This document shows, in pieces, positions 2,048 to 44,469 of a DNA stretch of 64,000 nucleotides. The translations under genes and the position numbers were made by a program. Numbering within the stretch: position 1 is the first letter of the stretch; every line of letters begins with the position of its first letter. Below the pieces are notes generated by a model that worked only from the letters and a program-made list of their open reading frames with translations, searched no databases and was not told where the DNA came from. The DNA comes from Utricularia gibba. Its lineage: Eukaryota; Plantae; Magnoliophyta. Location: NCBI GenBank assembly GCA_002189035.1, contig NEEC01000004.1, positions 4,092,001 to 4,156,000 of the forward strand, given 5' to 3'.

Positions 2048-2337
2048 TTTCGGCTTGCGCAATGGTTGCTCTCAGAATGCCCCAAAATGGCGGCAGCCAC
2101 TCAATCAGCGCTTCGAGTTGCAGGAAGCTAAAAATTTGGGTTTTGGCGGGGCTTCGAGATTTCAACCCCAACCCGAAATCCAATCCGATATTGGATTGAT
2201 TATTTATTATATATATTTTTGTATATAAATTTATTGTAATCTATAAAAAATAATGTACGTTTATAAATAAATAAATATTATTCAAAATTAATAATATAAA
2301 CTTATTATTTAAATATCAATAAAGAGATAAATAATTA

Positions 2338-2648
2338 GGTGATGTTTGATAGTTGATTAAGATTTAAATTATATGATTTAAAATAAAAAACATATTTTAT
2401 AATTTTAGATTTTGGATTTATAATATATTTGATAAATAGATTTAGATGTGTTATACTTTATAATGAAAAATGTTTTTATTGCAATTTTAATGATTGTTTT
2501 AATATTTATTTTGAAATTAAGAAATAAAAAATAAATTGAAAATAAATATACGATTTAATAAAAATATACCATCTTTTCATTTTTCAATAATATGTATATA
2601 CAATTTTAAATTATTAATAAAACCTATATCCAATTACTAAACCCTCCT
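2338..2648. mobile_element. Tourist-like MITE remnant in F-box 3' flank, re-amplified with the array (copies near 6540-6855, 7210-7515, 8255-8560)
   Basis: Imperfect terminal inverted repeats AGGTGATGTTTGATAGTTG / CCAATTACTAAACCCTCCT around an AT-rich core; TSD-like TTA/TTG. Family assignment is by motif resemblance only. Confidence 0.4.
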
Positions 2649-2687
2649 TGTCTGTCCTCGAATGAATGTAATTCATGCCTCAATCCG

Positions 2688-4169
2688 CTATATCAATGAG
2701 AGCTCCTGTATTTCAATGGCGGACGATGCCTTCAAATGAACCCATTCAGGATACCCATCCCAGGGGACGTCATCGGCCTTGGCTTTGATGACAATCAGAC
2801 TCCGCAGCTGAGACGTCGAGATGGCACAAAAAAATCTCACCAGCAACAGGTGATCCGGAGTGAATTTCATTCCCGATATCCTCACGTGGGTCAAGTGTTT
2901 CAACCTGGCTGGAGACCTCAGAGCCTTCATTAGATGATCTTCATCTCTTTTCCTGTAACGCGGATGCCCACTCCAAATGCGCACTGGGCCTTCTTCAAAC
3001 TATCAAATGACAACATTAAGCAAACGATGTTAGACTCTCCGGTGTAACCAGGTTTCATCGGAAAAGTATTCGCTCACATCAATGGAGACTCTCTGGATCA
3101 TTGGGCATCACAGAGTGAAGATGAGGAAGGGCGCGTGACCGGAGCGAATGTCATATCCCAGAGGAACATGCAAATGAAATTCCTTGACATTCCAAAAGTA
3201 GTAGTCTTGGATCCCCAATCTGAGATCTTCTACAAATGCCTGCAAGTGGAGGAAAACAAGAGGTTATAGCGCCTTTGTCGTCATTAACACAGAACCCTGG
3301 AGACAGGCATGGCATACCCCAGTTGTGCGAAAAGGAAACCCTAGCACATATTTCGTGGCAGAGAAGATTCCGAGATCATGTACTAGGGAATGGCGATGCA
3401 TGACGCAGTCACGAAGTGTGTCATCGTCGCTCACCGATGACTCATATAAGAGAAGGGTGGCATCCACTTCATGGGAGAAGTGAAGCCGCTTCACAGAAGG
3501 AGCAATCATACCGACGGCGAAATACCAAAGACCACAATGCTCAAACACTATTTCCGTCAATTCCTACAAACCTCCCCCGTGAAGGTAAAGAGATTGTATA
3601 GCTTGACACCATTTGAGGTTCAAAACTCGTAATGACTTGCAACTACGTAAAATTTCATTGGCCAAATCCTGTACCAGGTGAATGCCCTCGAGCTTCAGCT
3701 CTTGCAAATTAAAAAGTGGGTTGGAGTTCATGGGCGGTAGCACAGGGATGCAGTTCGTCAAAGACAGGCTTCTCAATTTCTTCGAAACGGGGATGATTCC
3801 CAGATGAATGGGGATGGGCTCCTTCGACAGATGCAAGTCCAGACAAATTTCTTCAAAACCAATGCTGACAACTCTTGCTACCCAGGAATGCACAAGCTCC
3901 TCATTCCCTACTGCATTGAAACACAGTTCGAACCTATGAGCACCAACCCCAGAATGACTGAAGATAATATCACTGGCGATCGTCTTCATCAACTCGTCAT
4001 TGCGTAGCCTTGAGCGGAAGGCTTCATCCAAGGAAACATCATGACAGAACTTGTACGCATCCTTGAATCTCTTTGAAAACTTGAAGATTGCGTAGACCTT
4101 GGTTACCGGCAAAAGAGACAGAATTCTTTTGATAACATCATCGGGCATGTCCATAAACTTGCAATCCAT
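2688..4169 (-). pseudogene. F-box/LRR/FBD protein copy 1, two in-frame nonsense codons
   Basis: N-terminal F-box-like MPDDVIKRILSLLPVTKV; LRR-like LRSLSL/LQELKL/LRVLNL repeats; 3 exons. CAG>TAG at 3564-3566 and CGA>TGA at 3108-3110 relative to paralogues. Confidence 0.88.
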
Positions 4170-5269
4170 TATCCCTAAACAGCGAAACTTGATTCCTTCC
4201 CTAATACCTCTACAAGCAACTTTGCACGTTCAGTATATTAAAATGAACTCAATACAAAGTGAATGTACATATTAATAACAAACAATCTTACATTAATATT
4301 TTAAAGTAAAATAATAAAAAATATATAAAATTATAAATCACTAATAATCAATTATATTTAATATTTTTTAATATAATTTATATTTATTATTTACTTGAGG
4401 TTTATTGTGCTCACCCAACTCAAGTAATCCTTTGAACATAGCATAAGAGTATTTCTCATACGATATGGCTTAGATGGTTAAAATAGGTTTTATATTGATT
4501 TGAGTTTCCGTAAAAAAGAAAATAAAAATATTGAAAAGATGCATTCAACTTAGACAACAACATTAGATTGATCTAATATACAAATATTATCTACAATTAC
4601 AAAAAACATAAATTTAAACCAAATCAAACACCAGTTTAACTTGATAGTAAATATTAGAACATTCATTTTTATATTAGAATTTGAAAGTAAAATAATCAAT
4701 TATATAATAAATTACTTATTAGTGATCATTTAAATCTAATCTTTAATTATCGGATTCTGAATTTCAATAAAATAAAAATGAATTTATATTTCATAATTTT
4801 AAAAATATATTTTAAAATAAAAAATATGTTATATTGTAAAAAAATTAATTATTTTGTAATAATGTACATCTAAATGATTAAAACTTATGAAATGCTCAAA
4901 TTATCAAATATTTCAAAATAAGTTAATTAATCTTACCATTAATTAATTTTTTAAAGAAAACAAAGTACAATTAGTACCCTACCTAACCCCTAATGGCATT
5001 AGCTACTTAAAATATATAAATAATAGTTTACATAATACATTTGAACTCGTATACTTCAAAACCTTATAAATGAAAATTTAATGAAGAAATTAAATTAAAA
5101 TGGTACTATTAAAAAAAATATTGAAATATAAGATTAAATAAAATGATTTTATTTTGTTTTTGAGAATAAAAATACTCTAAAAATTGAAAATAAATGTGTG
5201 CATAATATAAAATAAGAATAAAAATATATAGCATGTGTTTATTTCAACACTCTCAAATCAAGTAGCCCA

Positions 5270-5382
5270 ATAACTAACCTTCAAACTATATTTATTTATT
5301 GGTACGAGTAACGTCTCTTCGCTTGGTGTCAATAGTATGGGGTGTGAGCATTTCACATTCCCCTTCAGCTATATTATATACT
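5270..5382 (-). promoter_or_regulatory. Putative TATA + non-coding first exon (short uORF) + 5'UTR intron donor of the F-box gene
   Basis: GC-richer island conserved in spacers 1, 3 and 4. TATATAATAT at 5371-5380; uORF MLTPHTIDTKRRDVTRTNK* at 5351-5292; donor AG|GTTAGT at 5278; acceptor-like TTTCGCTGTTTAG| just before each F-box ATG. Inference, no transcript data. Confidence 0.45.
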
Positions 5383-5973
5383 GAAAAATTAAATATTTAA
5401 TTATGAATTTAAATAAAATTGAATATAAAAAATATTAAAAACGTATTCAATTCCAAAAATCTGATGCTTGTTTTGAAAGTGTAGAATACACTAAATTGAC
5501 TTAATTTTTGAAAACATTGATAAAATAAAAATATATTTTAAAAATAAATTTAAAAAATCATGTTAATTTTGATTGCATCGATCTGAACACTCATATCAAA
5601 TTTTCTAAAATATTATACAATATATAATCAAAATCAAAAATTTGTATGTAATTTGGTCATCAATAATTTTGATTTTTTGATTATGAAATTCTTGGAATTA
5701 CGAATATTGGCCGTGGGTTCTAAGATCCAAAGGTGTAACATATAAATCTAATATTTAAATAAAAACAAATTATGGCTATATGGATTGTCACTTCTCTACA
5801 TCACATTCATCAAAATTCTTGTTTACGGAATCTATAATAATATTTTTAATTTTGATGAAATTTTATATTCCTGTTTTTTTTTTTTTTCAAAATTTCAGTT
5901 ATTTTCATAATCTGAAATTTCCCAAATTTCAAATAATGGACTAAAGATATGGGATCCAATGTTGTATTAAAAT

Positions 5974-6350
5974 TAAGGGTGATAATAGGATTAATATAAC
6001 CGAATTGATAACCGAATGGAACCGAATTAAATCAGTTCGGTTTCGAATTTATCCAATTATGCGATTAAAAACTAAAAGAATCGATTTTTTTTAAAAAAAA
6101 ATTAACAAGAGATGATTATTAAGATTAACTCAGATCTATAACTGAATAAATGTATAAATTAATAATTAAAATTAAATTACAAACAACAATACATAAAATT
6201 TATCAAATTATCTAAAAAAAATAATGAATTTGATAAATAACTAAATTAATTAATAACCGATTTATGTCAAATTTGACTAACCGAACCCGAACCTAATTTT
6301 TGGATTTCGATTCAATTCTATTTGAAACGATTCGATTAATCCTTTCACTC
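5974..6350. mobile_element. Decayed non-autonomous DNA transposon with AACCG/CGGTT subterminal repeats (also about 11413-11780, 15948-16280, 21994-22310)
   Basis: Degenerate TIRs GGGTGATAATAGGATTAAT / ATTAATCCTTTCACTC; clustered aaccgaa and ttcggtt/ttcgatt motifs at both ends. Present in all four spacers, so it predates the array expansion. Confidence 0.45.
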
Positions 6351-6479
6351 GATTGCTAACCGAATTTTGCTCATTGTTAATCAAGCTGGATGTGTATAGA
6401 ATCCTCAACAGTGGTCGGTGGCATTCTGATATGGAAATGAATCAAAAATCGCAGATTGAGAAACGCACCTACTCAAATA

Positions 6480-8115
6480 TATATTATTCAAAATTAATAA
6501 TATAAAATTATACTTTAAATATCGATAAAAATAAATAATTCGGTGATTTTTTATAATTGATTAAGATTTTAATTATATGATTTGAAATACAATATAATTG
6601 ATGATTATAAATTTCAAATATGTTTGATATATTATATTTTAGAATGAAGATATATTTTTTTGTAATTTTAAATGATTGGTTTTATATTTATTTTGTATTT
6701 AATTACTAAAAAAGATAAATTAAAAACAAATTTATTATTTAGTAAAGATATATTATCTTTTCAATTTTCGACAAAAATATTTATGCGATTTTAATTTATT
6801 TTAAATCATTTAAATAATAATTACTATAAATTGCATCAATTACTAGACTCTCCTTGTCCATCCTCGTCTAAGTTAGTCCATAAATGTACTTTCACACCAA
6901 AATATATTGTATTGCCCTCTTCTTACTCACAGATGATAGCTCTTGGATTTCATTGGTAGACGACCCCTTCAAATGAACCCATTCAGGATACCCATCCCAC
7001 TGGACATCATAGGCCTTGGCTTTGATGACAACTAGACTCAGAAGCTGGTACGTTGACATTATACTATATATATATATATATATTATATTTGTATATAAAA
7101 TTTTCAGTAATATATATATAAAATAATGTATGCTTATCAATAACAATATTATTCAAAAAAATTAATAATACAAACTCATCATTTATATATCAATAAAAAG
7201 ATAAATAATGAGGTGATGTTTGATAATTGATTAAGATTTAAATTATATGATTTAAAATAAAATATATTTTATGATTTAAGATTTAAAATATATTTGATAA
7301 ATGTATTTAGTTATGTTATAAGTTATAATATAAAAATGTTTTTATTGTAATTTTAAATGATTGATTTTATATTTATTTTGAAAGTAATTACTAAAAAGAT
7401 AAATTAAAAATAAATACACGATTTAATAAAGATATATCATATCTTCATTTTCGATAAACATATATATGTGATTTTAAATACCTAATCAATCATATATCCA
7501 ATTACTAAACTCTCTTTGTCTTCCCTCCTCCAACGTTGTACATAAATATAATTTCACACTTAAATCAGCTATATCGCCTTCGTCTTCCTCCGAGATGATA
7601 GCTTCTGAATTTCAATGGTGGATGATGCCTTCAAAGATAGGATGTCGACATAGCACAAAAAAAAAACAAAATATATTTGATAAATTGATTTAGTTATGTT
7701 ATATTACATAATACAAAAATGTTTTTATTGTAATTTTAAATAATCGGTTTTATATTTATTTTGAAATTAATTATTAAAAAAGATAAATTATAAATAAATA
7801 CACGATTTAATAAAGAAATACCATCTCTTCATTTTTCAATAAACATATATATACAATTTTAAATACTTAGTCAATCCTATATCTAATTACTAAACTCTTC
7901 TTGTACTGCCTCATCCAACGTTGTCCATAAATGTAATTTCATGCCTAAATCCACTGCATCCCCTTCGTGTTCCTGCTCCGAGATGATAGTTCCTGGATTT
8001 CAATGGTGGACAATGCCTTCAAATGAACCCATTCACGATACCCATGCCAGGGGACGTCATAGGCCTTGGCTTTGATGACAACCAGAATCCGAAGTTAGGA
8101 CGTCGACATGGCACA

Positions 8116-8178
<63 letters not shown>

Positions 8179-8600
8179 TTATAAATAACAATATTATTCA
8201 AAAAAATAATAATACAAACTCATCATTTCTATATCAATAAAAAGATAGATAATTAGATGATGTTTGATAATTGATTAAGATTTAAATTATATGATTTAAA
8301 ATAAAATATATTTTATGATTTAAGATTTAAAATATATTTCATAAATGGATTTAGTTGTGTTATATTACATAATACAAAAAAATTATTGTAATTTTAAATG
8401 ATCGGTTTTAGATTTATTTTGAAATTAATTATTAAAAAAGATAAATTAAAAATAAATATACGATTTAATAAAGATATACCATCTCTTCATTTTTCGATAA
8501 ACATATGTATGCGATTTTAAATAGTTAATAAAACCTATATCCAATTAATAAACTCTCCTTTTTCTTCCTAGTCCAACGTTGTACATAAATATAATTTCAC
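6480..8600 (-). repeat. Three tandem ~450-570 bp units of MITE flank + truncated F-box last-exon fragment (6892-7055, 7560-7655, 7947-8114)
   Basis: Fragments encode SLVVIKAK.YDV.WDGYPEWVHLK.SS..EIQELS or deleted versions of it; all stop at or next to gtcgacat.gcac + A-run. Confidence 0.88.
8115..8172. repeat. A19 + (TA)n microsatellite
   Basis: Directly visible; shorter (TA)n tracts at about 7062-7083 and 12079-12095. Confidence 0.95.
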
Positions 8601-8602
8601 AC

Positions 8603-10117
8603 CTAAATCAGCTGTATCGACTTCGTATTCCTGCTCCGAGATGATAGCTTCTGGATTTCAATGGTGGACGACGCCTTCAAATGAACCCATTCAGGATAGC
8701 CGTCCCAGGGGACGTCATAAGTCTTGGCTTTGATGACAACCAGACTCCGAAGCTTGGAAGTCGACATACCACAAAAAAATCTCACCAGCAGTAGGTGATC
8801 CGGAGTGAACTTCATTCCCGATATCCTCACGTGGGTCAAGTGTTTGAACATAGCTGTAGAATTAATGGCATTCATCACACGATCTTGGTCCCTTTTCCTG
8901 TAACGCGGATACCCAATCCAAATGCGCGATGGGCCTTCTTCAAACTGTCAAATGACAACATCAAACAAGCGATGTTAGACTCTCTGCCATGACCAGGTTT
9001 CATCAGAAAAGTCCTCACTCACATCCATTAAGACTCTCTGTATCATCGGGCATCGCAGAGTAAAGATGAGGAAGGGGGCGTGACCGGAATGAATGCCGCA
9101 TTCCAGAGGAACATGCAAATGAAATTCCTTCACATTCCAAAAGTAGTAGTCTTGGATCCCGAATCTCAGATCCTCTACAAACGCCTGCGAGTGGAGCAAA
9201 ACAGGAGGTTATAAAGCGTTTGTCGTCGTTAACACAGAATCCTAGAGATAGGAATTGCATACCCCAGTTGTGCGAAAGGGTAAGCCCAGCACATATTTCG
9301 TGGCAGCGAAGATTCCGAGATCATGTACCAGGGTATGGCGATGCATGATGCAGTAACGAAGTGTGTCACCGTCGCACACCGACGACTCATGTAGGAGAAG
9401 AGTGGCATCCACATCATGGGAGAAGTGAAGCCGCTTCACAGAAGGAGCAACCATACAAATAGCGAAATGCCAAAAACTACATTGGTCAAACACTATTTCC
9501 GTCAATCCCTTCAAATCTTCCCCATGAAAGTAAAGGGAATGCACGCTGACGCCGCAACATCGTCTGAGGTTCAAAACTCGCAATGACTTGCAACTGTGAA
9601 AAATATTGTCAGCCACATCTTGTACCAGGTGAATGCCCTCAAGTTTCAACTCCTGCAAATTCGCAAGTGGGTTGGAGTTGATGCTCGACAGCACAGGGAT
9701 GCAGTTCGTCAAAGAGAGGCTTCTCAATTTATTGGAAACGGGGATGATTTCAAGATGAAGGAGGATGAGCTCTATCGAATACAAGTCCAGACAAATTTCT
9801 TCGAAACCAAGGCTAGCAACTCTTGCTACCCAGGAATTCACAAGATCCTGATTCCCTCCTCCATCAAAACATAGTTCAAACCTACGAGCACCAACCCCAG
9901 AATGACTGAAGATAATATCACTGGTGATCTTCTCCATCAACTCGTCATTGCAAAGCCTTGAGCGGAAGGCTTCATCCAAGAAAACATCACGACAGAACTT
10001 GAAAGCATCCCCGAATCTCTTTGAAAACTTGGAGATTGCATAGACCTTGGTTACCGGCAAAAGAGACAGAATTCTTCCGATAACATCATCGGGCATGTCC
10101 ATAATCTTGTGATCCAT
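8603..10117 (-). CDS. F-box/LRR/FBD protein copy 2 (only copy with intact ORF, ~452 aa)
   Basis: Exons 10117-9263, 9184-9023 and 8944-8603; two phase-0 78-bp GT-AG introns; no stops; FBD-like C-terminus (KHLTHVRISGMKFTPDHLLLVRFF...LRSLVVIK). Confidence 0.85.
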
Positions 10118-12135
10118 TATCCCTAAACAGCAAAACTTGATTCCTTTGAGACAATCAAACAACTTTGCACGTTCAGTATATCAAAATGAGCTCAATACAA
10201 TGCTCCATTTAGTTTATTTATAATATGAAATATTATTAAAACAAATAATTTCATATTAATATATTAAAATAAAATAGTTAATTATATGATAAATTAAAGA
10301 TTATTAAAATTGATTAAATCTAATATTTTTAATATAATTCATATTTATTATGTATTTAAATTCAATATATTTATAACATTCTTTGGATCATTAATTTCAA
10401 AATGATATAAGAGAATTTTGCGTATGATATATTTAAATGTTCAATATAAGTTTCATATTAATCTGAGTTCCAATAAAAAAAAAACAAACAAACAAACAAT
10501 TGCATTGAACTTAGACATAAAACTAAATCAATCTATGACACAAGCATTAACTACAATCACAAAAAACCACAAATTTAAACGGGATGAAAGATTATTTCAA
10601 CTTGAGAGTCAATATTAGAAAAATAATCTCATATTGAAATTTAAAAATAAAATAATCAAATATATCATGAATAACTAGTATTATCTAATCGCTTCATGTG
10701 TACCCGTTAATTCCATTCGATTCTTAATTTCAACAAAAAAAATGAATTTATATTTTATAATTTCAAAATAAAAAATATGTTCTATTGTAAGACGTAATAG
10801 TGTACATTGACATGATTAAAAGTTATGAAATGTTCAAATTATCAAATATTTCAAAATAAGGTAATTAATGTTACGATTAATTAATTTTTATTTTAGGTAC
10901 AATTAGGACCCTACCAACTCCAAAGATATTATGCATTGACTTAATTTTTGAAAATATTAATAAAATAAAATTATATTTTAAAAATAAATTAAAAAAATTA
11001 TGTTAACTTTGATTGCATCGACCCAAACCTCCATATCAAATTTTGTAAAATATTATACCAATATATAGTCAAAATAAAAAATTTATATGTAATTGGTTGT
11101 CAATAATTTTGATTTTTTAATCATGAAATTCTCAGAATTACAAATATTGGCCGCAGGTTCTAAGATCCAAAATTTTAACATATAAATTCAATATTTAAAA
11201 TAAAAAAACAACTACGGGTATCTTGATTGTCACTTCTCTAGATTACATTCATAAAAATTCTCGTTTACAAAACCCTAATAATATTTTAAATTTTGATAAA
11301 ATTTCATATATTTCTGTTTTTTTTTTCAAAATTTTGATTTTTTTAATAATCTGAAATTTTCTGAATTTCAAATATTAAACTAAGGATGTGGGATCCAATG
11401 CTGTATTAAACTTAAGGGTGATTATTAGGATCAATACAATGGAAACGATAACCGAATGGAACAAAATTAAATCAGTTCGATTTCGAATTAATCAAATTAA
11501 TCGATTAAAAACTAAACAATTCGATTTTTTTAAAAAAATTGTTTAACCAGAGGTGATTATTATGATTAACCTAATGGCTTAAATGTATAAGATAATACGA
11601 AAAATTAAATTAAAAATAAAAATACAAAAAAAATATTGAATTATCTAAAAAATGGTTAATACAACAAGTAATTGAATTAACCAATAATCGATTTATGCCG
11701 AATTTCACTACTCAAATCAAACCCAATTTTTCGATTTCGATTCAGTTCTGTTTGAAATGATTCGGTTAATCCATTTTCTCGATTACTAACCGAGTTTTGC
11801 TCACTGCTAATCAAGCTTGATGTGTATAAAATCCTCAACGGTGGTCGGTGGCATTTTGCTATGGAAATGAACCAAAAATTGTAGGCATTGAAACGCATCT
11901 ACGCAAATATATATTATTCAAAATTAAGAATACAAACTTATACTTTAAATATCAATAAAAAGATAAACAATGATATGATGTTTGATAATTGATTAGGATT
12001 TTAACTATATGATTTGAAATAAAATATATGAATATAATAAAAATATACTATCTTTTCAATTTTCAATAAATAAATAAATATATATATATATATATAATTT
12101 TAAATTCTTAATAAAATCTATATCAAATTACTAAA

Positions 12136-12400: not shown

Positions 12401-12555
12401 GGATATATCAATTAATGTCAAATTTATATTCATGTGTTTTTATATATTAATTAATAAATATATACAATTTTAAATTATTAATAAATTCTATATCTAATTA
12501 CTAAACTCTTCTTGTACTGCCTCATCCAACTTTGTCCATAAATGTAATTTCATGC

Positions 12556-14066
12556 CTAAATCCACTGTATACCTTTCGTCTTCTTGCTATGATATGATAG
12601 CTCCTGGATTTCAATGCCGTACGATGCCTTCAACTGAACCCATTCAGGATACACATCCTAGGGGCGGTCATGGACCTTGGCTTTGATGACAACTAAATTC
12701 CGCAGCCGGGACGTCGAGATGGCACAAAAAAATCTCACCAGCAGCAGGTGATCCGGAGTGAATTTCATTCCGGATATCCTCACGTGGGTCAAGTGTTTCA
12801 ACCTGGGTGGAGAATTAATGGCCTTCATCACACGGTCTTCATCCCTTTTCCTGTAACGCGGATGCCCACTCCAAATGCGCGATGGGCCTTCTTCAAACTA
12901 TTAAATGACAACATCAAGCAATCGATGTTAGACTCTCTGCCATAACCAGGTTTCATCAGAAAATTCCTCACTCACATCCATTAAGACTCTCTGTATCATC
13001 GGGCATCGCAGAGTAAAGATGAGGAAGGGGGCGTGGCCGGAGTGAATGTCACATTCCAGAGGAACATGCAAATGAAATTCCTTCACATTCCAAAAGTAGT
13101 AGTCTTGGATCCCGAATCTCAGATCCTCTACAAACGCCTGCGAGTGGAGCAAAACAGGAGGTTATAAAGCGTTTGTCGTCGTTAACACAGAATCCTAGAG
13201 ATAGGAATTGCATACCCCAGTTGTGCGAAAGGGTAAGCCCAGCACATATTTCGTGGCAGCGAAGATTCCGAGATCATGTACCAGGGTATGGCGATGCATG
13301 ATGCAGTAACGAAGTGTGTCACCGTCGCACACCGACGACTCATGTAGGAGAAGAGTGGCATCCACATCATGGGAGAAGTGAAGCCGCTTCACAGAAGGAG
13401 CAATCACACCGACGGCGAAATACCAAAAACTACATTGGTCAAAAACTATTTCCGTCAATCCTTGCAAACCTTCTCCATGAAAATAAAGAGAATCTACAAC
13501 GTGACACCATCTGAGGTTCAGAACTCGTAATGACTTGCAACTGCGAAAAATTTGGTCGGCCAAATCCTATACCAAGTGAATGCACTCGAGCTTCAGCTCC
13601 TGCAAATTCACAAGTGGGTTGGGGTAGATCCTCGACAGCACAGGGATGCAGTTCGTCAAAGATAGGCTTCTCAATTTATTCGAAACGGGGATGATTCCAA
13701 GATGAAGGGAGATGGACTCCTTCGACGGATGCAAGTCCAGACAAATTTCTTCGAAACCAATGATGGCAACTCTTGCACCCAGGAATGAACAAGCTCCTCA
13801 CTCCCTGCTGCATCTAAACACAGTTCGAACCTATTAGCACCAACCCCAAAATGACTGAAGATAATATCATTGGTGATCTTCTCCATCAACTCGTCATTGC
13901 GAAGCCTTGAGCGGAAGGCGTCATCCAAGGAAACATCACGACAGAACTTGAAAGCATCCCCAAATCTCTTTGAAAACTTGGAGATTGCGTAGACCTTGGT
14001 TACCGGCAAAAGAGATAGAATTCTTCCGATAATATCGTCGGGCATGTCAATAATCTTGCCATCCAT
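12556..14066 (-). pseudogene. F-box/LRR/FBD protein copy 3, frameshift plus nonsense
   Basis: 1-bp deletion at about 13777 (HSWVARV > HSWVQEL; not a homopolymer) and TGG>TAG at 12658-12660 in exon 3. Confidence 0.88.
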
Positions 14067-14481
14067 TATCCCTAAACAGCAAAACTTGATTACTTCCCTG
14101 ATTCCTCTAGGCTTTGAGACAAACAATCAACTTTGCACATTTAGTATATCAAAATGTTTATTAATAGTATGAAATAGTATTAGATCAAATAATAACATAT
14201 TAATATATTAAAATATAATATTAAGGTATATAATAAATTACACATCATTAAAATTGATTAAATCTAATATTTTTTTAATTTAATTCACATTTCTTGTATA
14301 ATTAAATTCGCATGTACTCGTCTGATACATTGAATGCTTAATTTCAAAATGATATCATATAATTTTGCGTATGAGATATTTGGATGTTCAATATGAATTT
14401 CATATTAATCTGAGTTCTGAAAAAAAAAAAACAAACAAACAAATGCATTGTACTTAGACAAGAAATTAAATCAATGTATAA

Positions 14482-14542
14482 CAGTTGAACCCAAAACCAT
14501 AGTTAAACGGTTTAATGGGTTCAACCCGTTTTTAAAACACTG
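14482..14542. mobile_element. Truncated hAT-like MITE remnant specific to unit 3
   Basis: Ends in TTTTAAAACACTG (TIR-like); internal inverted repeat GTTGAACCCA/TGGGTTCAAC; absent at the homologous position in unit 2. Confidence 0.35.
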
Positions 14543-16386
14543 CCTACGATCACAAAAAATCACAAATTAAAACTGGATCAAAGATTACTTCCACTTGAGG
14601 AGGGGTATTAAAACAATAAATCTCATATCGAAATTTGAAATTAAAATAATTAAATATATATAAAAAAAATTATAAATAATTAATAATAAGTTGGATCTAA
14701 TCGTTTCACATGTGCTCGTCAAATACATTGGATTCTTAATTTCAACAAAAAAAATAAATTTATATTTATGATTTTAAAAATATATTTTAAAATAAAAACA
14801 TGTTCTATTGTAAAATAATTAACTATTCCGTAATAATGTACATTGACATGATTAAAAGTTATGAAATGATCAAATTATCATATATTTCAAAATAAGGTAA
14901 TTAATGTTACCATTAATTAATTTTTTTTTTTTAGAAAACAAGGTGCAGTTTGGACCCTACCGACCCCAATGACATTAGGCACTGAAAGTATATAAATAAT
15001 AGTTTACATAATATATTTGAACTCCCATCATTCAAAACCTTATAAATGAAAATTTACCGTAGAAATTAAATTAAAATGACACTATTAAAAAATGTTGAAA
15101 AATTAAATCGAATAAAATGATTCTATATTATTTTTTAGAATGAAAATATTCTAGAAAATGAAAATAAATGTGTGCATAATGAAAAATACGAATAAAAATA
15201 TATAATTTGTATTTATTTCAACACTCTTAAATCAAATAGGCCAATAACCAACCTTTAAATTGTATTTATTTCCTAATACGAGTAAAGCTCCTCGTTTGGT
15301 GTAACTAATACGGGGTGTGAGTATTCCCACATTCCCCTTGGGATATATTATATACTGAAAAATTAAATATTTAATTTTGAATTTAAATAAAATCAAAAAT
15401 AAAATACTAATAACGTTCTCAATTAACAAAATCAGATGCTTGCTTTGAAAGTACAGAATGCAATTCATTGACTTAATTTTTGAAAATATTAATAAAATAA
15501 AAATATATTTTAAAAATAAATGTAAAAAATTATGTTAATTTTGATTGCATCGACATAAACTCCCATATCAAATTTTCTAAAATATTATACTAATATATAA
15601 TCAAAATAAAAAATTTATATGTAATTGGTAGTCAATAATTTTGATTTTTCAATTATGAAATTTCTCGAATTTACAAATATTGGCCGCAGTTTCTAATATC
15701 CAAAATTATAAAATATAAATTCAATACTAAAAAAATATAAAAAACCATTATGGGTATCTTGATTGTCACTTCTCTAAATACATTCATAAAAATTCTTGTT
15801 TAGAATCCCTAATAATATTTTAAATTTTGATGAAATTTCATATATTTCTGTTTTTTTTTTTCAAAATTTCGATTTTTTTAATAATCTAAAATTTTCTGAA
15901 TTTCAAATATTGAACTAAGGATGTGGGATCCAATGCTGTATTAAACTTAAGGGTGATTATTAGGATTAATATAATCGAAATGATAACCAAATCAAACCAA
16001 ATTAAATCAATTCGACTTCGAATTAATCAAACAAATCGATTTTTTTTTCAAAAAAATTGTTTAACCAGAGATGATTATTAAGATTAACCTAACCGAATAA
16101 ATGTATCAGTTAATTACAAAAAATAAATTAAAAATAAAAATACAAAAAAATTATCGGATTATCTAAAAAAATTATTAATACAATAAATAATTGAATTAAC
16201 CAATAATCGATTTATATCACGCAGTTTTTTTATTTCGATTCAATTCTGTTTGGTGTAGTTTGGTTAATCAATTTTCTTGATTACTAACCGAATTTTCTCA
16301 ATGGTGGCATTGTGCAATAGAAATGAAACAATAGAAACCCACCTACTCAAATATATCCTTATGAATATGTATTGCAGTGTCAAAAG

Positions 16387-16800
16387 TCAAACCTTGTATT
16401 CACTAAAGAAACTTGACAAGAACCCAATCACACAGCACATTACCAAGAGTAGGGGCACAGCGATTCGTCGAAGTTCAAATCCTCCTGCGTTATCCAAATT
16501 CCTTGCATTTACGAGGGCATCCAGCAGTTCGATTCTCTCCGCCAGATCTGCGATCTCCTTCTGGAGACTTCTAGTGGATTCTGCGTGTGTCTTAGCGGTG
16601 ATACACCGTGAGAGTCTCTGGTTAACGTCCTCTACCTCCTGCTCCAGGCGTCCACATCTCCCATCCAGGTCCTGGGACTGTGGCTTCACATCTCCTGAGC
16701 GGGCGGAGAGACCACGTGCCGGTGATGAAGTATTGGAAAGTTTCTTAGACATTTTATGTACCATGAGACGTAGTGTGTCAATAGTATGGGGTGTGAGCAT
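16387..16800 (-). CDS. Chimeric ORF: F-box spacer island start fused to duplicated 3' half of the coiled-coil tail-anchored gene (137 aa, or 125 aa from ATG 16764)
   Basis: Open frame MLTPHTID|TLRLMVHKMSKKL...ELRRIAVPLLLVMCCVIGFLSSFFSEYKV*; colinear with the C-terminal part of 22447-23113; junction at about 16774-16781. Expression unproven. Confidence 0.5.
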   Translation of the reverse strand: MLTPHTIDTLRLMVHKMSKKLSNTSSPARGLSARSGDVKPQSQDLDGRCGRLEQEVEDVNQRLSRCITAKTHAESTRSLQKEIADLAERIELLDALVNARNLDNAGGFELRRIAVPLLLVMCCVIGFLSSFFSEYKV

Positions 16801-17204
16801 TCCACGTTTCACTTAGGGTATATTATATATTGAAAAAATTCAATATTTGATTTCGAATATCTAATATTAAAAACGTATTCAATTCAGAAAATCGGATGCT
16901 TGCTTTAAAATGAATAATATAATAAATTGACTTAATTTTTGAAAATGTTGAAAATAAAAATATATTTTTAAAATAAATTTAAAAAAACATGTTAGTTTTG
17001 ATTGCATCGACATGAATATCCATATCAAATTTTCTAAAATATTATACCAATATATAATTAAAATAAAAAATTTGTATGTAATTATGTCGTCAATAATTTT
17101 GATTTTTAGATCATGAAATTCTCTAAATTTAGAATATTGGCTGCAGGTTTTAAGATCCAAAGTTATAACATATAAATCCAATATTCAAAATAAAAACAAA
17201 TTAG

Positions 17205-18775
17205 ATGATAGAATGAGAAATTGGTAGATGCCACGTGGAAATAATTATAATAAGGTTACATAAATCAGCCAAATGATAGGATATCAAATTGGCTTTCACC
17301 TATGACAACCTATAACAGATGCACAGGCCTGCAGAAACTAGAACGAGGCAACGTCAGACCTCAAACCTTTCAATAGAATTTGAAAAGTAGCCCACTTGCA
17401 GAAATCCCAATGGATGGCGGTTACATTTAAGTCAAACTATATATGCGGCCACCATAATTGCCAAATTCATAAAAGTGCTAACATCCACATAAATCGGTCG
17501 AGAAAGTCTCTCCTATAAATAGGAGAATGTTTGAGGACCAATGGATCCGGCATTCTATGCAATCCTTGTAAACCTTTTAGTAGAAAAGCTGAGGGAAAGG
17601 TACTTTTCGTCTAAAGCAGCCGACTTATGAAAATATATGATTTGGAATAGAGATATTTCTTCTAGAATCTCATGAAAAAGATTGGAGATACCCTTAATTT
17701 GATTGGAAAAAATGAAAGTGGAAGCAAGAGAGAGGAGAGGACCGATAGTGAACAAGGAGGAGCAGTGAGCAAGGAAGATTGGAGGTTCTCCAATGAATGG
17801 CTTCGGTGGACTTCAGATCTACATTTCTCCACTAGATTTCCATCTAGAACTTTTATTTTCAGTAGATGTATGACTGCAAGCAACTGATGTACATTTTATT
17901 TCTATTTTCTGCACTTTCACTTCTATTGTTGAACTTGCTACTGTTACTTTCCACGTTTTCATGCTTTCTATTATGTTTCTGGTGCTTTGTTGTGAATAAA
18001 AAATCTCCTGTAGATTTTATTTCAACTTATGAACTTATTTATGTTTGATTTCTTCAGTCTTTAGTTCTTGAGTTTAAACCTATCAGTTCTCTAGAGTGAC
18101 ACAAACGTTAGATCCTGGTATAAAACCCAACCAAAATACCTTCACTTTATATTTTATATGCATCCCTATTATTTTATATGCTTCTTCACTATTACAACTT
18201 GTTCATTTCAGCTGTTGTTATTTTATATCTTACGTGCATGAGAGCAAACCTTCAGAAAACTCTCTTGTTTTCAGTAAATTGTGATCCACTTCAGGAAATT
18301 GCAGCTATTTCCTGTGGATTCGACGCTTGCTTATCATACTACATTAATTTTTGTGATTTTATAGTCGAATAGTTGGATTTATAAATTTCTTTTGATACGT
18401 TGTATGTGCTAGACCACGACATTTAGTAAACAAATTTAAACGTTCATCATTCATACCTGTCGAATAGAATAAAAAATAGTAATAGTAAAACAGAAAATGA
18501 AGTTGGGGGCAAGGCAATAGAGCTGAATCGTAAAGGTGTGAAGAAAGTGAGCTATTAAGGGATGAAGATGAAATCGAAGATTGCTTTCGAAATATGCAAA
18601 TGGAATTGGCAAATTGAAAGAAGGAAGAGGCTTGTCACTCACACCAAGGGCTCTTGACATCATTGGCTAGAGTAAGAATATATTCTTCAGGGACTGAATA
18701 TCAGGTGTGAACGAAGGAGATATTCAGTTAGCTAGATTCATGACCCATCTCGGATGTAAGAATGAGAAGGACACC
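17205..18775. mobile_element. LTR retrotransposon remnant (Ty3/Gypsy Athila-like LTR on + strand, followed by inverted internal-like fragment)
   Basis: Unique ~1.6 kb insertion. TGATAG start; palindromic TATA TCTCCTATAAATAGGAGA (17509-17526); U5-like CCTGTGGATTCGACGCTTG...AGTAAACA end near 18432. No intact TSD, PBS or ORF found. Confidence 0.45.
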
Positions 18776-18908
18776 TTCAAATGATAGCTCCTGGATTTCA
18801 ATGTATATATAATTTTAAATTCTTAATAAAACCTATATACAATTACCAAACCCTCCTTGTACTTCCTCGTCCAATCTTGTCCATAAATGTAATTCATGAC
18901 TAAATCCG

Positions 18909-20406
18909 CTATATCGCCTTAGTCTTACTGCTATGACATGATAGCTCCTGGATTTCAATGGCGGAGGACGCCTTCAAATGAACCCATTCAGGATACCCAT
19001 CCCAGGAGACGTCATGGGCTTTGGCTTTGATGACAACCAAACTCTGCAGCTGGGACGTCGACATGGCACAAAAAAATCTCACCAGCAGCAGGTGATCCGG
19101 AGTGATTTTCATTCCTGATATCCTCACGTGGGTCAAGTGTTTCAACCTGGCTGGATACCTCATAGCCGTGATCAGAAGATCTTCGTCCCTTTCCCTGTTA
19201 CTTTGTTGCCCACTCCATATGCGCGGTGGGCCTTCTTCAAACTGTCAAATGACAACATCAAGCAAGCAATGTTAGTCTCTCCGGTATAACCACATCGGAA
19301 AAGTACTCACTCCCAGCAATGGAGACTCTCTGGATCATCGGGCATCGGAGAGTAAAGATGAGGAAGGGGGCGTGGCCGGAGTGCATGCCGCATGCCAGAG
19401 GAACATGTAAATGAAATTCCTTCACATTCCAGAAGTAGTAGTCTTGGAACCCCAATCTTAGATACTCTACAAACGCCTGCGAGTGGAGGAAAACAAGAGG
19501 TTATAGCGCCTTCGTCGTCGTTAACACAGAATCCTGGAGACAGGAATTGCATACCCCAGTTGTGCGAAAAGGAAACCCCAGCACATATTTCGTAGCAGCG
19601 AAGATTCCGAGAACATGTACTAGGGAATGGCCATGCATGACACAATCACGAAGTGTGTCATCGTCGCTCACCGATGACTCATATAAGAGAAGGGTGGCAT
19701 CCACTTCATGGGAGAAGTGAAGCCGCTTCACAGAAGGAGCAATCACACCGACGGCGAAATACCAAAAACTACATTGGTCAAATACTATTTCCGTCAATCC
19801 CTGCAAACCTTCGCCGTGAAGGTAAAGAGATTGTATACCGTGACACCATCTGAGGTTCAGAACTCGTAATGACTTGCAACTGCGAAAAATTTGGTCGGCC
19901 AAATCCTGTACCAAGTGAAGGCACTCGAGCGTGAGCTCCTGCAAATTCACAAGTGGGTTGGGATAGATCCTCGGCAGCACAGGGATGCATTTCGTCAAAG
20001 ATAGTCTTCTCAATTTATTAGGAACGGGGATGATTCCAAGATGAAGGGGGATGGGCTCCTTCGACGGATGCAAGTCCAGACAAATTTCTTCGAAACCAAT
20101 GCTGGCAGCTCTTGCTACCCAGGAATGCACAAGATCTTGATTCCCAGCTGCATCGAAACACAGTTCGAACCTACGAGCACCAACACCAGAATGACTGAAG
20201 ATAATATCACTAGCGATCGTCTCCATCAACTCATCATTGCAAAGCCTTGAGCAGAAGGCTTCATCCAAGGAAACATCATGACAGAAATTGAAAGCATCCC
20301 CGAATCTCTTTGAAAACTTGGAGATTGCGTAAACCTTGGTTACTGGCAAAAGAGACAAAATTCTTCTGATAACATCATCAGGCATGTACATAATCTTGTG
20401 ATCCAT
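18909..20406 (-). pseudogene. F-box/LRR/FBD protein copy 4, exons open but intron-2 donor mutated GT>GG
   Basis: Exon 1 20406-19555, exon 2 19476-19315, exon 3 19241-18909. Expected donor at 19314 reads GGGAGT; the next GTGAGT (+4) shifts frame; intron retention gives a stop at 19258. Confidence 0.7.
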
Positions 20407-22446
20407 TATCCCTAGACAGAAAAACTTGATTATTTCCCCGATTCCTCTGAGACAAATAAACAACTTTACACGTTCAATATATCAAAATAAACTGAATACA
20501 ACAGCGCATGTATTATCAATATATCCTACTTAATATTATTAACCAAACACACCCTAAAGCTAAATATAAGGGTATTATAGCAAATAATATTCGAAATTAA
20601 TAAAATGAAATATATAAAAAATTATAAATCAATAATAATCGATTGAATATAATTTTTTAATGTTATATACTGGATTTTATGTGAACCCGTGTAACTCATT
20701 GTATCTTTAATTTCAAATAATATCAAATCATTTGTCTCGTGGCACATATTTGATCATCAAGATAAATTTTGTATTGATTTAAGTTTTAGTTAAAAAAACA
20801 TGAAAAAAGGAGATGTATTCTACTAAAGATAACAAATTAAATTAATCTATGATATAAAAATTAACTACAATCTGATATCATGATTTGAAATTGAAATATT
20901 CAATTATATAATAACTTGTAAATTGTTTGTAATCGATTTAATTTAATTTTTTTAATATGATTTATATTTTCTATATATTTGGGTTATTTATCTTAGGTAT
21001 CAGATTCTTAATTTTAATAAAAAAAAGAATTCATATTTTATAATTTTAAAAATATAAAATATATGTTCTATTTTAAAATAATTAATTATTTTGTAATAAT
21101 GTACATTGAAATGATTAAAACTTATGAAATGCTTAATTTTTTTAGAAACTTAGGTACAATTAGTACCGTACCAACCCCTAATGACTTTAGGCACTGATAA
21201 TATATAAATAATAGTTTTACATAATATATTTGAACTCCCATCCTTCAAAACCTTATAAATGAAAATTTAGCAAAGAAATTAAATTAAATGGTACTATTAA
21301 AAAAATGTTAAAATAATCACGAAAAATTCAAATAAAATGTTTCTATGTTATTTTTTAGCTTGAAAATATTCTACAAAAAGGAAAATAAATGTGTGCACAA
21401 TACCAACACTTTGAAATCAAATAATCTAATAACCAACCTTCACACTGTATTTATTTCTTGGTACGAGTAACGCCTATTCGCTTGGTGTCAATAGCAGGTG
21501 TGAGCATTTCAGGTTCACCTTAGGGTATATTATATACTGAAAAAATTTAATATTAAATTTTGAATTTAAATAAAATCGAATTCCAAATACTAGAAACATA
21601 TTCAATTCACATAATCGGATGCTTGCTTTGAAAGCACAAGACAATAAATTGATTTAATTTTTGAAAATATTGATAAAATAAAATTAAAATCATGTTAATT
21701 TTGATTGCACCTACCTGAACCCCAATATCATATTTCTAAAATATTATACCAATATATAATTAAAATAAAAAAATTTATACATAATTTGGTCGTCAATAAT
21801 TTTGACTTTTCGATCATGAATTTCGAATATTGGCCGCGGGTTCTACGGAATCCTCAATAATATTTTAAAATTTGATGAAATTTCATATTTCTGTTTTTTT
21901 TTTCGAAGTTTCTATTTTTGGGATCAAATTAATAATCTCAACCTAATTTCAAATATTGGACTAAAGATGTGGGATCCAATGTTATATTAAACTTAAGGGT
22001 GATTATTAGGATTAATATAATGGAATTGATAACCGAATCAAATCATATTAAATCAGGTCGGTTTCGAATTAATCAAGCGAATCGATTTTTTAAAAAAATT
22101 GTTTAACCAGAGGTTATTATTAAGACTAACCTAACCGAATAAATGTATAAGTTAATTACAAAAATTAATTTAAAAAATAAAAATACATAAAAGTTTTAGA
22201 ATTATCTTAAAAACAATTAATTTGATAAATAAAAAAAAATAACTAATAACCGATTTGTGTCATCAATTCAATTCGGTTTGATACGGTTTGGTTAATTGGC
22301 TTTCTCGATTTAAATGCTAATCAAACTCGATGTGTATAAAATCCTGAACGATGGCATTCTGCAATGGAAATGAACAAAAAATCGCAAGCAGAGAAACGAA
22401 TCCTAATCAAATATATCCTTCTGAATAGGTACTGCAATGTCAAAAG

Positions 22447-23487
22447 TCAAACCTTGTATTCACTAAAGAAATGTGATAAGAAACCAATCACACAGGACAT
22501 TACCAAGAGTAGGGGCACAACGATTCGTCGAAGTTCAAGTCGTCGTGGGTTATCCAAATTCCTTGCATAGTCGAGGCCATCTAACTGGTCGATTCTCCTC
22601 GTCAGATTTGCTATCTCCCTTTGGAGACTTGTAGTGGATGCTGCTTGTGTCCTGGGGCTGATACGCTGTGAGAGTCTCTGGTTAACGTCCTTTACCTCCT
22701 GCTCCAAGCGTTCACATCTCCCATCCAAGTCCTGGGACTGCGGCGTACATATCTTCTCCACATCTTCTAAGCGGGTGGAGAGACCATGTGCCAGGGATGA
22801 AGTATCGGAAAGTTTCTCAGACATTTCATTTACCCTGAGACGCAGTGTGCCAAGTTCAATTTCAAGGTGTTTGGGCACTTCAATCTTCAGATGACGGTTG
22901 AGGGAATCTACATTGTTACTCAACTGCTCAATCTGCTGGTTGCATTCGGTTATGTCGCTCCTTGATGCGTTGCAATGGAGGCGGAGACTTTTTTGTTCTT
23001 CTTTCAATGTTTCAAAAACCCGTTCTAGCTTCAGGATTCTGGCATATGAAACCAGCAAGCCAGCTTCCATCTCATATGGTATCAGATCATCAGTACATTC
23101 AAGGGATGGACTCCTGAAAATCAAAATATTGAGAAAAGAGAAATTCAACACCAAGAAAGACTCAAAAGAATGTTACCCGTCTGCTTCACACAGGTTCAAG
23201 GCCTTGGAACAGTAGTTCAGATATTTCTTCAACTCATCGAGTTTCGTAAGTGCAGTAAACACCCCTTCTTTCAAAAGACTGTTATTTTCACCCTTTAGAG
23301 TCACTTCTAGTTCTTCTGCAAAATGATTCAGAACATCAATCACAAGGCGCTTCTGTAGTAAAGCCTCTTCAAACTTCTCGATGGTCTCGCAGCATGATGC
23401 ATCCAATCTCAATAAGCGCCTGCCCTTCAAGAAATCCAATTCCTGGACGCAACACTCCAACTGGAGTGAGCCCATACGAGATGACAT
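22447..23487 (-). CDS. Unrecognised coiled-coil protein with C-terminal transmembrane anchor (~325 aa)
   Basis: Two exons (23487-23177, 23113-22447) joined in frame by a 63-bp GT-AG intron; heptad-rich helices; hydrophobic IVVPLLLVMSCVIGFLSHFF then SEYKV*. Start codon uncertain. Confidence 0.7.
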
Positions 23488-24852
23488 CCCCACCGTCCAA
23501 TCAAACCCAGAGCAAACAAGAGCGCAAAAACATGAATCAAGAATACCATCTCCAATTCAGCTAAAATCTTTATGGAAATAAAAACCCCCTCGTCGTCATC
23601 AGGAGAACGAAAAGGAACAAACAAACCAAGAATCAGAAACAACCGCACATCCATATTTATAGCATCACTCCAAATCGACATAACTAACAATAGATCAAGC
23701 AAGAAACAATACTCAGATTCAAGAAAAACGGAACAGCACCCTAAAGACACTGGGATTGCCGAGAAGTTTTGAGGCAGGAAGAGATGTTCACTCTTCAAAT
23801 TTTAGAAACGGGCGCTCATCGTAATCAACACACCGGTTTATGTAACTCGGTTCATTCTTCTCTTCAAATGTTGTAAAATCGAACTAAATTTATTACAAAG
23901 AATTTAGATTAAATCCTTTATAAATTTACGAAAAATATAATTTTAATTATTTTACTTATAAAAAAACAATTTCTTATTTTTAGTTATTGGTATTATTAAT
24001 CTTCATTTTTTAAGAAAATTATAAAAGTGATCTTTGTGTTTTAATGTTATCCTCACTGTAATAATTTGATATAAATAATTTATACTGTTTTAAATAATTG
24101 ACATTAGTAACATTTAATTGTTTAAAAATTAGATGAAATTAATTCTAAGTAACCATGTTTATTGTTTAATAATGATGATTAATTATATTTATTATTTAAA
24201 CAGAATTTCAGGGGTTAATTATATTCAATAAGTTTAATTTTGAAAACTAATTATACCCGGAATCTTTGGGGATCAATTTTTAATGAGGACGAAATATACA
24301 ATTTATGTTAAAAATGATGACAATTTTTGCTAAAATATCAAATACTGAATTTTAATATACAATTTTCTCATTCTTTTACATCAATTTTTATTTAAATTCA
24401 AATAAATTCAAGTTATTATTAAGATATATTATTTCACGCAAGATCATTTTTAACATACTTCAAATGAGTCCTTAGCATATAATTAGTAATTGTAAATTTT
24501 ATTAGGTATTTTTGCAAGAATAAAAACCTCATCAAAAATATATAAATTTTAAAAAGGAAATTAGGAAAACAGCCTTGTTGTTTTCCGCTCATGGGCGACA
24601 GTCCAGAAAGCCCAGTAGTTCTCTAACTGGGCTGGGCTTTGAGTCATTTACTTCATGCTTTCTGTTTCGTGGGCCGTAGCCCATTGGCGTGACATTTGTT
24701 TTATATTATAATATTGTTTTCTGAATGAATATGTGGATTTATTGTAATAAAAAAAGAGCATTTTGCATCTGAGTGGAGATTTAGCCGTCCGGCCCGGAGT
24801 CGGAGATCCAACCAGCGGAGCTTCTCTTCCACAACTCTCCGAATCTGCATAT

Positions 24853-42927: not shown

Positions 42928-44469
42928 TTAATGGCAGATGACTGAGACCTTGGGAACCTGGACAGGGAATTGGTGGATATCATCAGTCCATGGGTTTTTC
43001 TCCATGTCCGGGTTTACGTTCCTGACAGCTCTCCAGACAGCACTGTTGCATTTGAAGCCAGATCCAAATGCTATCTGCCAGATCCTGTCTCCCCTCTTGA
43101 TCCTCCCCTTGGCTTCTGAATACGCCAGCTCGTACCAGAGGGAGCTGCTCGATGTGTTGCCAAATCGATAGAGAGTCATCCTTGAAGGCTCCATCTGCCA
43201 TTCTGTGAGTTGAAGGTTCTTCTCTAGTTCATCAAGTACAGCTCGTCCACCTGCGTGGATGCAGAAATGCTCGAAAGCCAACTTGAAGTCAGGGATATAA
43301 GGTTTCAGCTTCATCTTGAGTAGCTTCTTCCCCATCAAGGTTGCAAAGAAAAGCAGTTGTTCAGACATGGGTAGCACAAGAGGGCCCAAAGTCGTGATAT
43401 TTGTCTTCAATGCATCTCCGGCCACAGCCATCAAATCTTTGGACAATGCAACTCCGATTTTGCCAGTGGAATCCTCCATTTGTGTGACGCAAGAGAAGCA
43501 TTTATCATCACCGCCTTTGTGGGTTCTCACGGTATGAACCAGACGGTACTTGGATCTCCGGCGGTCGGATCTTCTATTGGACAGAAGAATCGCAGAGCCT
43601 CCCATTCGAAAGAGACAGTTGGAAACAAGCATAGATCTTTCATTCCCAACATACCAATTCAGTGTAATATTCTCCATACTGAGTACCAGAGCATATGTGT
43701 TGGGATGAACCTGGAGAAGATCTTTAGCAAGATCTATTGAGATTAAACCAGCGCTGCAACCCATTCCACCAAGATTGTAACTTACAATATTCCCTCTGAG
43801 CTTATAATGGTTAGTGATCATGGCAGATAGAGAGGGTGTGGGATTGAAAAGGCTGCAATTCACAATCAGAATCCCAATATCTTTTGGCTTCAGAGAGGTT
43901 TTAGCAAGAAGATCATCAATGGCTCCAAACATAACCATCTCAGCTTCTTTTCTTGCTTCTGCCATAGATGGATTAGGAGGCACACGAAGAACTGCATCAG
44001 GAAGATAAGTGGAGTCACCAAGACCAGATCTTTCAAGAATTTTTCTCTGAAAAGAAAGATTTTCTTCACTAAATGATCCCATTAAGGATGATCTCTCCAT
44101 GAAAACCTGCCTAGTGCACTTTCTTTCATCATCTGGCTTGTAACAAGAAAAGTTCACGAGGTAAACATTTTTAGGCCTCGTCAGGGAATAAACAGTGGAT
44201 AAGAAGACTAGTAGAGTAGAGCAAACAATCACTGAGATTAGATTGAATTGGAGATGGTTCCAGAGAAGGTAAAGATCTTGTAAAGAAAATGTGGACACTT
44301 GAGCTGCAACAACCACAGCCAAAGGAGACAAAAACAGATACATTCCATGGGTTATGAGGTAATGATATCCCAGCTTCACATACTTCAATTTCACAGATTT
44401 TTTGAAATCAGGGAGTTTCTGTGAAGAAGATGCTGCAATAAGCGGCGTATCTGCGCCCGCTTCACTCAT
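42928..44469 (-). CDS. KCS11: 3-ketoacyl-CoA synthase, KCS11 type, 513 aa
   Basis: Intronless CDS; [27 protein letters not shown]; GMGCSAG catalytic Cys; FCIHAGG; FGNTSSSS; 72-bp 5'UTR intron at 44563-44492. Confidence 0.95.

Follow-up and report, generated by a model that had tools for sequence, protein, structure and literature searches.

A truncated coiled-coil gene copy behind a spacer island in an F-box/LRR array of Utricularia gibba: a probable by-product of tandem duplication

A chimeric open reading frame (ORF) in the genome of Utricularia gibba joins a copy of an AT-rich island, taken from the spacers of an array of F-box/leucine-rich repeat (LRR) genes, to the 3' half of a gene for a predicted tail-anchored coiled-coil protein, hereafter the parent. 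The ORF occupies positions 16387-16812 of the window, i.e., the whole analyzed stretch of 64,000 nucleotides (contig NEEC01000004.1 of assembly GCA_002189035.1, positions 4,092,001 to 4,156,000); all coordinates below are window coordinates, and the genes under discussion lie on the minus strand. The copy is probably a truncated partial duplicate left at the boundary of a tandem duplication, and most likely an unselected by-product of that event. A first-pass annotation had described the locus as a candidate newborn chimeric gene, driven by an F-box promoter and encoding a possible membrane-anchored partner of the parent protein. Its observations are confirmed in nearly every detail, and its interpretation is partly supported: the structure holds, the youth does not, and the promoter identity and the function are not supported.

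The junction is located at 16775-16781, a stretch of seven bases with one mismatch that is common to the island and the parent exon; three perfectly matching bases, CAC (16775-16777), lie inside this seven-base near-match. Written on the minus strand, with a slash at the joint, the sequence is TATTGACAC/CAAG in the island, CTTGGCACAC/TGCG in the parent, and TATTGACACACTACG in the chimera; thus, the chimera goes with the island as far as TATTGACAC and with the parent from CACACT on. Upstream of the joint in gene orientation, the segment 16775-17203 (minus strand) is an additional, fifth AT-rich spacer island, cut at the junction. In blastn comparisons it matches the spacer islands at 5326-5772 (83% identity), 15299-15733 (80%), 21485-21845 (75%), and, over a part of its length, 10926-11206 (86%). 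The segments on the two sides belong to paralogous units arranged head to tail, and their junction is a novel one, absent from the other units. The orientation is the same on both sides, and the reading frame is open across the joint. The junction reported earlier, an island copy fused via microhomology in the same orientation and in frame to the coiled-coil 3' half, is therefore real.

The parent gene has approximately 325 codons in two coding exons and adjoins the F-box/LRR array on its upstream side in gene orientation. The first coding exon (23178-23487, minus strand, with the ATG at 23487) is followed by an intron with GT and AG boundaries in phase 2 (23116-23177) and by the last exon (22447-23115), which comprises 221 full codons and the stop codon. 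The latter exon encodes the coiled coil, a hydrophobic tail anchor, and a terminal tail of 5-6 residues, and contains the equivalent of the breakpoint at about 22853. The copy lacks any counterpart of exon 1 and of the first 89 codons of exon 2, and is hence truncated relative to the parent. Its parent-derived coding part (16390-16776, minus strand) corresponds to the last 133 parental codons, reduced to 129 by a single 12-bp in-frame deletion. In a tblastn search, residues 90-222 of parent exon 2 align to 16776-16390 with 69% identity (E 2e-51), and in a blastn comparison of the window with itself, 15803-16781 pairs with 21848-22853 (79% identity over 1037 columns). The homology extends beyond the coding region into about 580 bp of 3' flank (15803-16386, matching the parent flank at 21848-22446 with 82% identity and 10 indel events). 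Apart from this homologous flank, the copy has also kept the stop codon and the hydrophobic anchor. This anatomy, read directly from the alignments, bears out the earlier description of a duplicate of about 130 terminal codons of the gene ending at 22447, as well as the in-frame deletion and the lack of stops.

Counted from a mechanically assigned GTG start, the chimera ORF (minus strand) has 141 codons and ends with the stop codon at 16387-16389. Two in-frame ATGs are available: the upstream one (uATG), at 16800 in the island part, gives a product of 137 amino acids (aa), and the one at 16764, at the position of a parental AGG codon, gives a product of 125 aa; both had been reported and agree with the ORF and the alignment. 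The parent indeed has AGG where the copy has ATG at 16764, and this part of the proposed AGG-to-ATG change stands; its direction cannot be shown without an outgroup. The best 19-residue hydrophobic window of the predicted product, IAVPLLLVMCCVIGFLSSF, has a mean Kyte-Doolittle value of 2.5 (2.33 in the parent) and is followed by 6 residues. With this single C-terminal hydrophobic segment and very short tail, the product would qualify as a tail-anchored protein. Modeled by AlphaFold2 from its single sequence, the 137-aa product is helical, at low confidence (predicted local distance difference test, pLDDT, of 56).

The age of the copy can be judged against the F-box/LRR genes that accompany it. 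G3 (12459-14066, minus strand) shares the duplicated unit with the truncated coiled-coil copy, and G4 (18930-20406, minus strand; intact first coding exon with the ATG at 20406) belongs to the upstream copy of that unit. G3 is a pseudogene, disabled in its first coding exon by a 1-nt deletion at about 13777 and by an in-frame stop near 13567-13569. Between the coiled-coil copy and the parent, 13% of the sites differ in the coding part and 18% in the flank. Over the 129 homologous codons, the synonymous divergence (dS) is 0.149, close to the 0.143 between G3 and G4 in codons 98-283. Contrary to the earlier annotation, the copy is thus not newborn, since it has accumulated this divergence and since G3, from the same duplicated unit, has meanwhile gained both a deletion and a stop.

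The substitution pattern of the copy is neutral in the pairwise, unpolarized comparison with the parent. The nonsynonymous divergence (dN) is 0.148 and dN/dS is 0.99 (bootstrap 95% interval 0.51-2.35), with 12.5 synonymous and 39.5 nonsynonymous differences, distributed over the three codon positions as 21/19/12. The G3/G4 pair served as a control: in codons 98-283 its dN is 0.061 with differences by position of 15/6/21, and in codons 1-95 dS is 0.26, dN is 0.099, and the distribution is 10/7/17. Pooled over 280 codons, dN/dS of this pair equals 0.42 (bootstrap 95% interval 0.25-0.72). The F-box pair thus has the excess of third-position differences expected under constraint, whereas the coiled-coil pair has no such excess; the coiled-coil dN/dS was equal to or below the F-box value in 2.75% of bootstraps. 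A dN/dS of about 1 relative to the parent is one of three outcomes that the first-pass annotation had itself named as speaking against its reading, and selection on the copy is not supported.

The present order of elements on the minus strand is: the parent; a spacer with its island; G4; a segment unique in the window, termed U; the island copy joined to the parental 3' half; a spacer with an island; G3; another spacer with an island; and G2, the next F-box/LRR gene. From this order we infer a single duplication event. The ancestral minus-strand order would have been the coiled-coil gene, a spacer with an island, an F-box gene, a spacer with an island, and the next F-box gene. Roughly 6 kb of this DNA, running from the island through the F-box gene and the spacer and including the coiled-coil 3' half, would then have been duplicated head to tail. 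The ends of the duplicated segment would have been the middle of the last coiled-coil exon (the equivalent of 22853) and a point in the following island (the equivalent of 21485), some 45 nt beyond its TATA-like motif, the new joint being sealed via 3-7 bases of microhomology. The upstream copy would have kept the 5' half and survives as the full-length gene of today, while the downstream copy (16390-16776) would have lost 190-odd N-terminal codons and come to stand behind the cut island. Thereafter the fragment most likely drifted without selection on the protein sequence, its frame staying open by chance, as the co-copied G3 decayed.

That one event copied both genes is suggested by the dS of the coiled-coil pair (0.149), which is bracketed by the two G3/G4 values (0.143 and 0.26), and by the fact that G3 and G4 are the closest F-box pair, with 88% DNA identity in the blastn comparison of the window with itself. 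The order of the island and the 3' half is exactly that predicted by a head-to-tail tandem duplication. The ends of the older units stop at the equivalent of 22416, 31 bp past the stop codon of the parent.

The same joint might also be a deletion scar, if a larger unit with the whole coiled-coil gene had been duplicated first and a later deletion of several kilobases, from the GTGCCAA of this gene to the GTGTCAA of the island, had taken away its 5' half. Deletions, too, are generally known to yield microhomology junctions. The segment U marks a further rearrangement of the region, and the spacers have suffered several deletions of hundreds of bases, e.g., the equivalent of 14985-15463 is missing from the spacer at 10052-11806. 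Still, this explanation requires two events where one suffices and is less economical, and tblastn and blastn searches found no remnant of the parental 5' half, nor any other trace of the parent besides the copy itself, elsewhere in the window. Given also the order of the island and the 3' half, we regard a deletion scar as improbable and retain the single tandem duplication.

The first-pass annotation had also taken the lack of stops despite many substitutions as a sign of function. The copy does lack the disabling mutations by which pseudogenes are recognized: it contains no stops, and its sole indel is 12 bp long and in frame. However, when the parental sequence was substituted at random with the observed transition/transversion ratio, no stop appeared in 48% of simulations at 20 changes, in 38% at 26, and in 16% at 52, so that the probability of an open frame ranges from 0.16 to 0.48. 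A deficit of indels was considered as a sign of constraint and rejected. In the AT-rich flank, 99 substitutions are accompanied by 10 indels (about 1 per 10), but this rate belongs to AT-rich, low-complexity DNA; in the equally old genic DNA of G3 and G4, only 3 indels accompany 175 substitutions (1 per 58). At this genic rate about one indel is expected for the 52 coding differences, and one, in frame, is observed. The opposite strand is open as well: at 16277-16816 (plus strand) there is a frame of 179 aa, longer than the sense ORF, and open frames evidently arise easily over the chimera segment. Taken together, the simulation, the expected indel count, and the longer antisense frame render the open frame of the copy unremarkable.

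In its usual place (21485-21845, minus strand), in the spacer between the parental 3' end and G4, the island stops about 1.08 kb short of the G4 ATG at 20406. In the chimera, the island copy carries the TATA-like motif TATATAATATA (16819-16829, minus strand), which is invariant in all four aligned islands and whose first T precedes the ATG at 16800 by 29 nt. Behind this motif, the three complete units have a patch of about 70 nt that is richer in G+C, and then a donor-like AAG/GTTGGT (the slash marks the putative splice point), and an acceptor-like pyrimidine tract with AG (YAG) occurs 40-60 nt before the F-box ATG in three of the four genes. On the strength of these elements, the island would be an F-box promoter with a non-coding first exon. 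If TATATAATATA acted as a TATA box, it would place the start of transcription at about 16794-16804, so that the ATG at 16800 would be lost or cap-proximal and the ATG at 16764 would be the working translation start. The uATG is absent from the island of unit 3, which has ATA instead. TATA-like strings are common at 20% G+C, and some of them occur close to the F-box ATG itself. The island was also considered as a conservation peak, and this was rejected: its three-way identity is similar to that of the rest of the spacer (22240-21000). The conserved TATA-like motif and donor-like site speak for an F-box promoter, and the distance of the island from the F-box ATG and the lack of a conservation peak speak against it; the island is at best a candidate promoter.

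Several points nevertheless weigh against the origin and the neutral fate proposed above. Firstly, the frame is unbroken over all 129 homologous codons, two in-frame ATGs are present, and the anchor and the 3' flank have been kept. Secondly, the joint probability of such an outcome under neutrality is modest, approximately 0.1-0.3 by a rough multiplication of the stop and indel figures. Thirdly, an invariant TATA-like motif stands at a sensible distance from the ATGs of the chimera. Fourthly, if the parent is under purifying selection, a pairwise dN/dS of 1 implies a ratio above 1 on the branch of the copy, which could mean positive selection and not decay. With regard to the single event, the segment U has no counterpart in the sister unit, so that at least one further rearrangement is needed, and the islands are all 84-89% alike, so that the predicted sister island is not singled out.

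An alternative, favored by the open frame with its two in-frame ATGs and by the kept anchor and 3' flank, is that the chimera is a functional young gene: the island would serve as its promoter, transcription would start about 30 nt after the TATA-like motif, and the resulting protein of 125-137 aa would pair or compete with the parent. The conserved TATATAATATA and the donor- and acceptor-like sites of the F-box units would fit, and approximately one-third of chimeras formed by tandem duplication in Drosophila change expression (PMC5460883). Set against this are the dN/dS of 0.99 without a third-position excess, an open frame that is not improbable by chance and faces an antisense frame of 179 aa, an island that lies about 1.08 kb from the F-box ATG and is conserved no better than its spacer, the missing uATG in unit 3, the death of the co-duplicated F-box gene, and the low pLDDT of the modeled product. 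In seven listed runs from the same species, whose kind was guessed to be RNA, the share of sampled words of 16250-17250 found was 0.00 in every case, which is a weak negative. We therefore think it unlikely that the chimera is a functional young gene, and the broader notion that the locus encodes a functional microprotein fares no better. The dominant-negative or antidote-like role suggested in the first-pass annotation is pure conjecture. Still less credible is its most specific form, in which a 125-aa product expressed from the captured island heterodimerizes with the orphan parent and modulates it at the membrane, the dN/dS of about 1 hiding rapid adaptive change on the branch of the copy; the locus would then be a plant microprotein that arose in one step from a duplication breakpoint. 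A truncated and unused duplicate remains the reading we prefer.

The parent is itself a candidate lineage-specific gene, and its long open frame suggests that it is real. Its two exons were searched separately. A word search with exon 2 found no relatives, an exhaustive HMMER scan of 1.84 billion representative sequences gave no match to the parent at E<=0.001, and comparison with the ESM Atlas gave a best score of 0.79 and no family. None of six ORF forms of the copy and the parent had an exact match in a protein collection, and Pfam searches with both yielded only sub-threshold coiled-coil noise. A word search with the first exon of G4 was likewise without a match; as even an F-box gene has none, the proteins of the source genome are probably not represented in the searched collections. 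With no detectable relatives of the parent there is no outgroup, and the differences between the copy and the parent are not assignable to either lineage. As a candidate lineage-specific gene, the relative-less parent is of some interest by itself.

Between the 3' end of G4 and the island copy, the usual part of the spacer is replaced by the segment U (17204-18800), which is unique in the window. The ORF listing of 17210-18900 revealed no recognizable gene, a Pfam search with one of the ORFs of U identified no family, and Rfam gave no match over 17210-24000. The start of U (18800-18779, minus strand) repeats a string of about 20 nt from the last exon of G4 (18958-18937). On its plus strand, U has TATAAATA at about 17515, with a short ORF after it.

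The window is plant nuclear DNA in which gene-sized blocks of about 40% G+C are interleaved with spacers of about 22% G+C. Its left third contains four F-box/LRR genes in tandem, all of them on the minus strand and of the At1g61320/AtMIF1 type. In Pfam searches these genes match PF23622 (E 2e-11, 2.8e-08, and 1e-09), while matches to the F-box domain PF00646 are weaker and exceed the cut-off only in G3 (22.1 bits); the domain order, an F-box followed by the LRR domain of the family, is that of this type. Besides G3 and G4, the array contains G1 (about 2200-4169) and G2 (about 6480-10162). G1 is disabled by a stop at approximately codon 203 of its first coding exon (3267-4169), and the first coding exons of G2 and G4 are open. 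Thus, two of the four F-box copies carry stops or frameshifts, and the array is a typical birth-and-death cluster. The spacers of the F-box genes are homologous to one another (4104-6376, 10052-11806, 14001-16303, and 20341-22350 in the blastn comparison of the window with itself), and every one of them contains an island, the one at 10926-11206 being partial.

G2 is far longer than its paralogs, and its 3' part is internally repeated (6481-7059, 7146-7635, 7668-8121, and 8191-8779, mutually 75-88% alike). The remainder of the window contains ordinary plant genes at 33536-35512, 37022-38095, 42931-44502, 54067-55308, and 61271-62425, which encode, in this order, a PPR protein with E, E+, and DYW deaminase domains, an exon of a CLC chloride channel, a FAE1/KCS condensing enzyme, an exon of an ABC-2 type transporter, and a PP2A B56 regulatory subunit. 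The region 45212-51519 is very AT-rich (about 20% G+C) and has direct and inverted repeats of its own: 46924-47180 is repeated at 50352-50594 and 48423-48796 at 51143-51519, and 45212-45451 is inverted relative to 47906-48159.

If the chimera were expressed and selected, it would be a clean and fully reconstructible case of a new plant gene built in one step at a tandem-duplication breakpoint, with the promoter from one gene and the interaction domain and membrane anchor from another. On the present evidence, it mainly exemplifies the usual outcome, in which an expanding array sheds partial duplicates that can stay readable for a long time without use; hence, an open frame by itself says little for the presence of a gene.

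Microproteins, e.g., LITTLE ZIPPER, are small truncated paralogs that are reduced to an interaction domain and act by titrating their larger relatives. The predicted product of the chimera would resemble them, as nothing but the coiled coil and the membrane anchor would be left of a larger paralog. It differs in its neutral divergence, whereas the known microproteins are, to our knowledge, conserved.

Chimeric genes formed by tandem duplication offer a closer structural parallel. Like them, the locus has a head-to-tail arrangement with short microhomology at the joint; both breakpoints would lie inside transcription units, and a putative 5' region of one gene is connected, without a change of orientation, to the 3' part of another. 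In contrast to such genes, the 5' partner here brings in no coding exons, and its share would be a promoter and some tens of non-coding bases at most. Moreover, the locus is old (dS of about 0.15) and not a recent segregating variant.

Unprocessed pseudogenes and gene fragments are common in the birth-and-death tandem arrays of plant F-box families. The copy differs from a classical duplicated pseudogene in that the fragment has neither a stop nor a frameshift and has gained possible start codons. On the other hand, it shares with duplicated pseudogenes its truncation, a dN/dS of about 1, and an array in which two of the four F-box copies are disabled. The locus is one more product of such duplication, without a sign of use and unusually easy to reconstruct.

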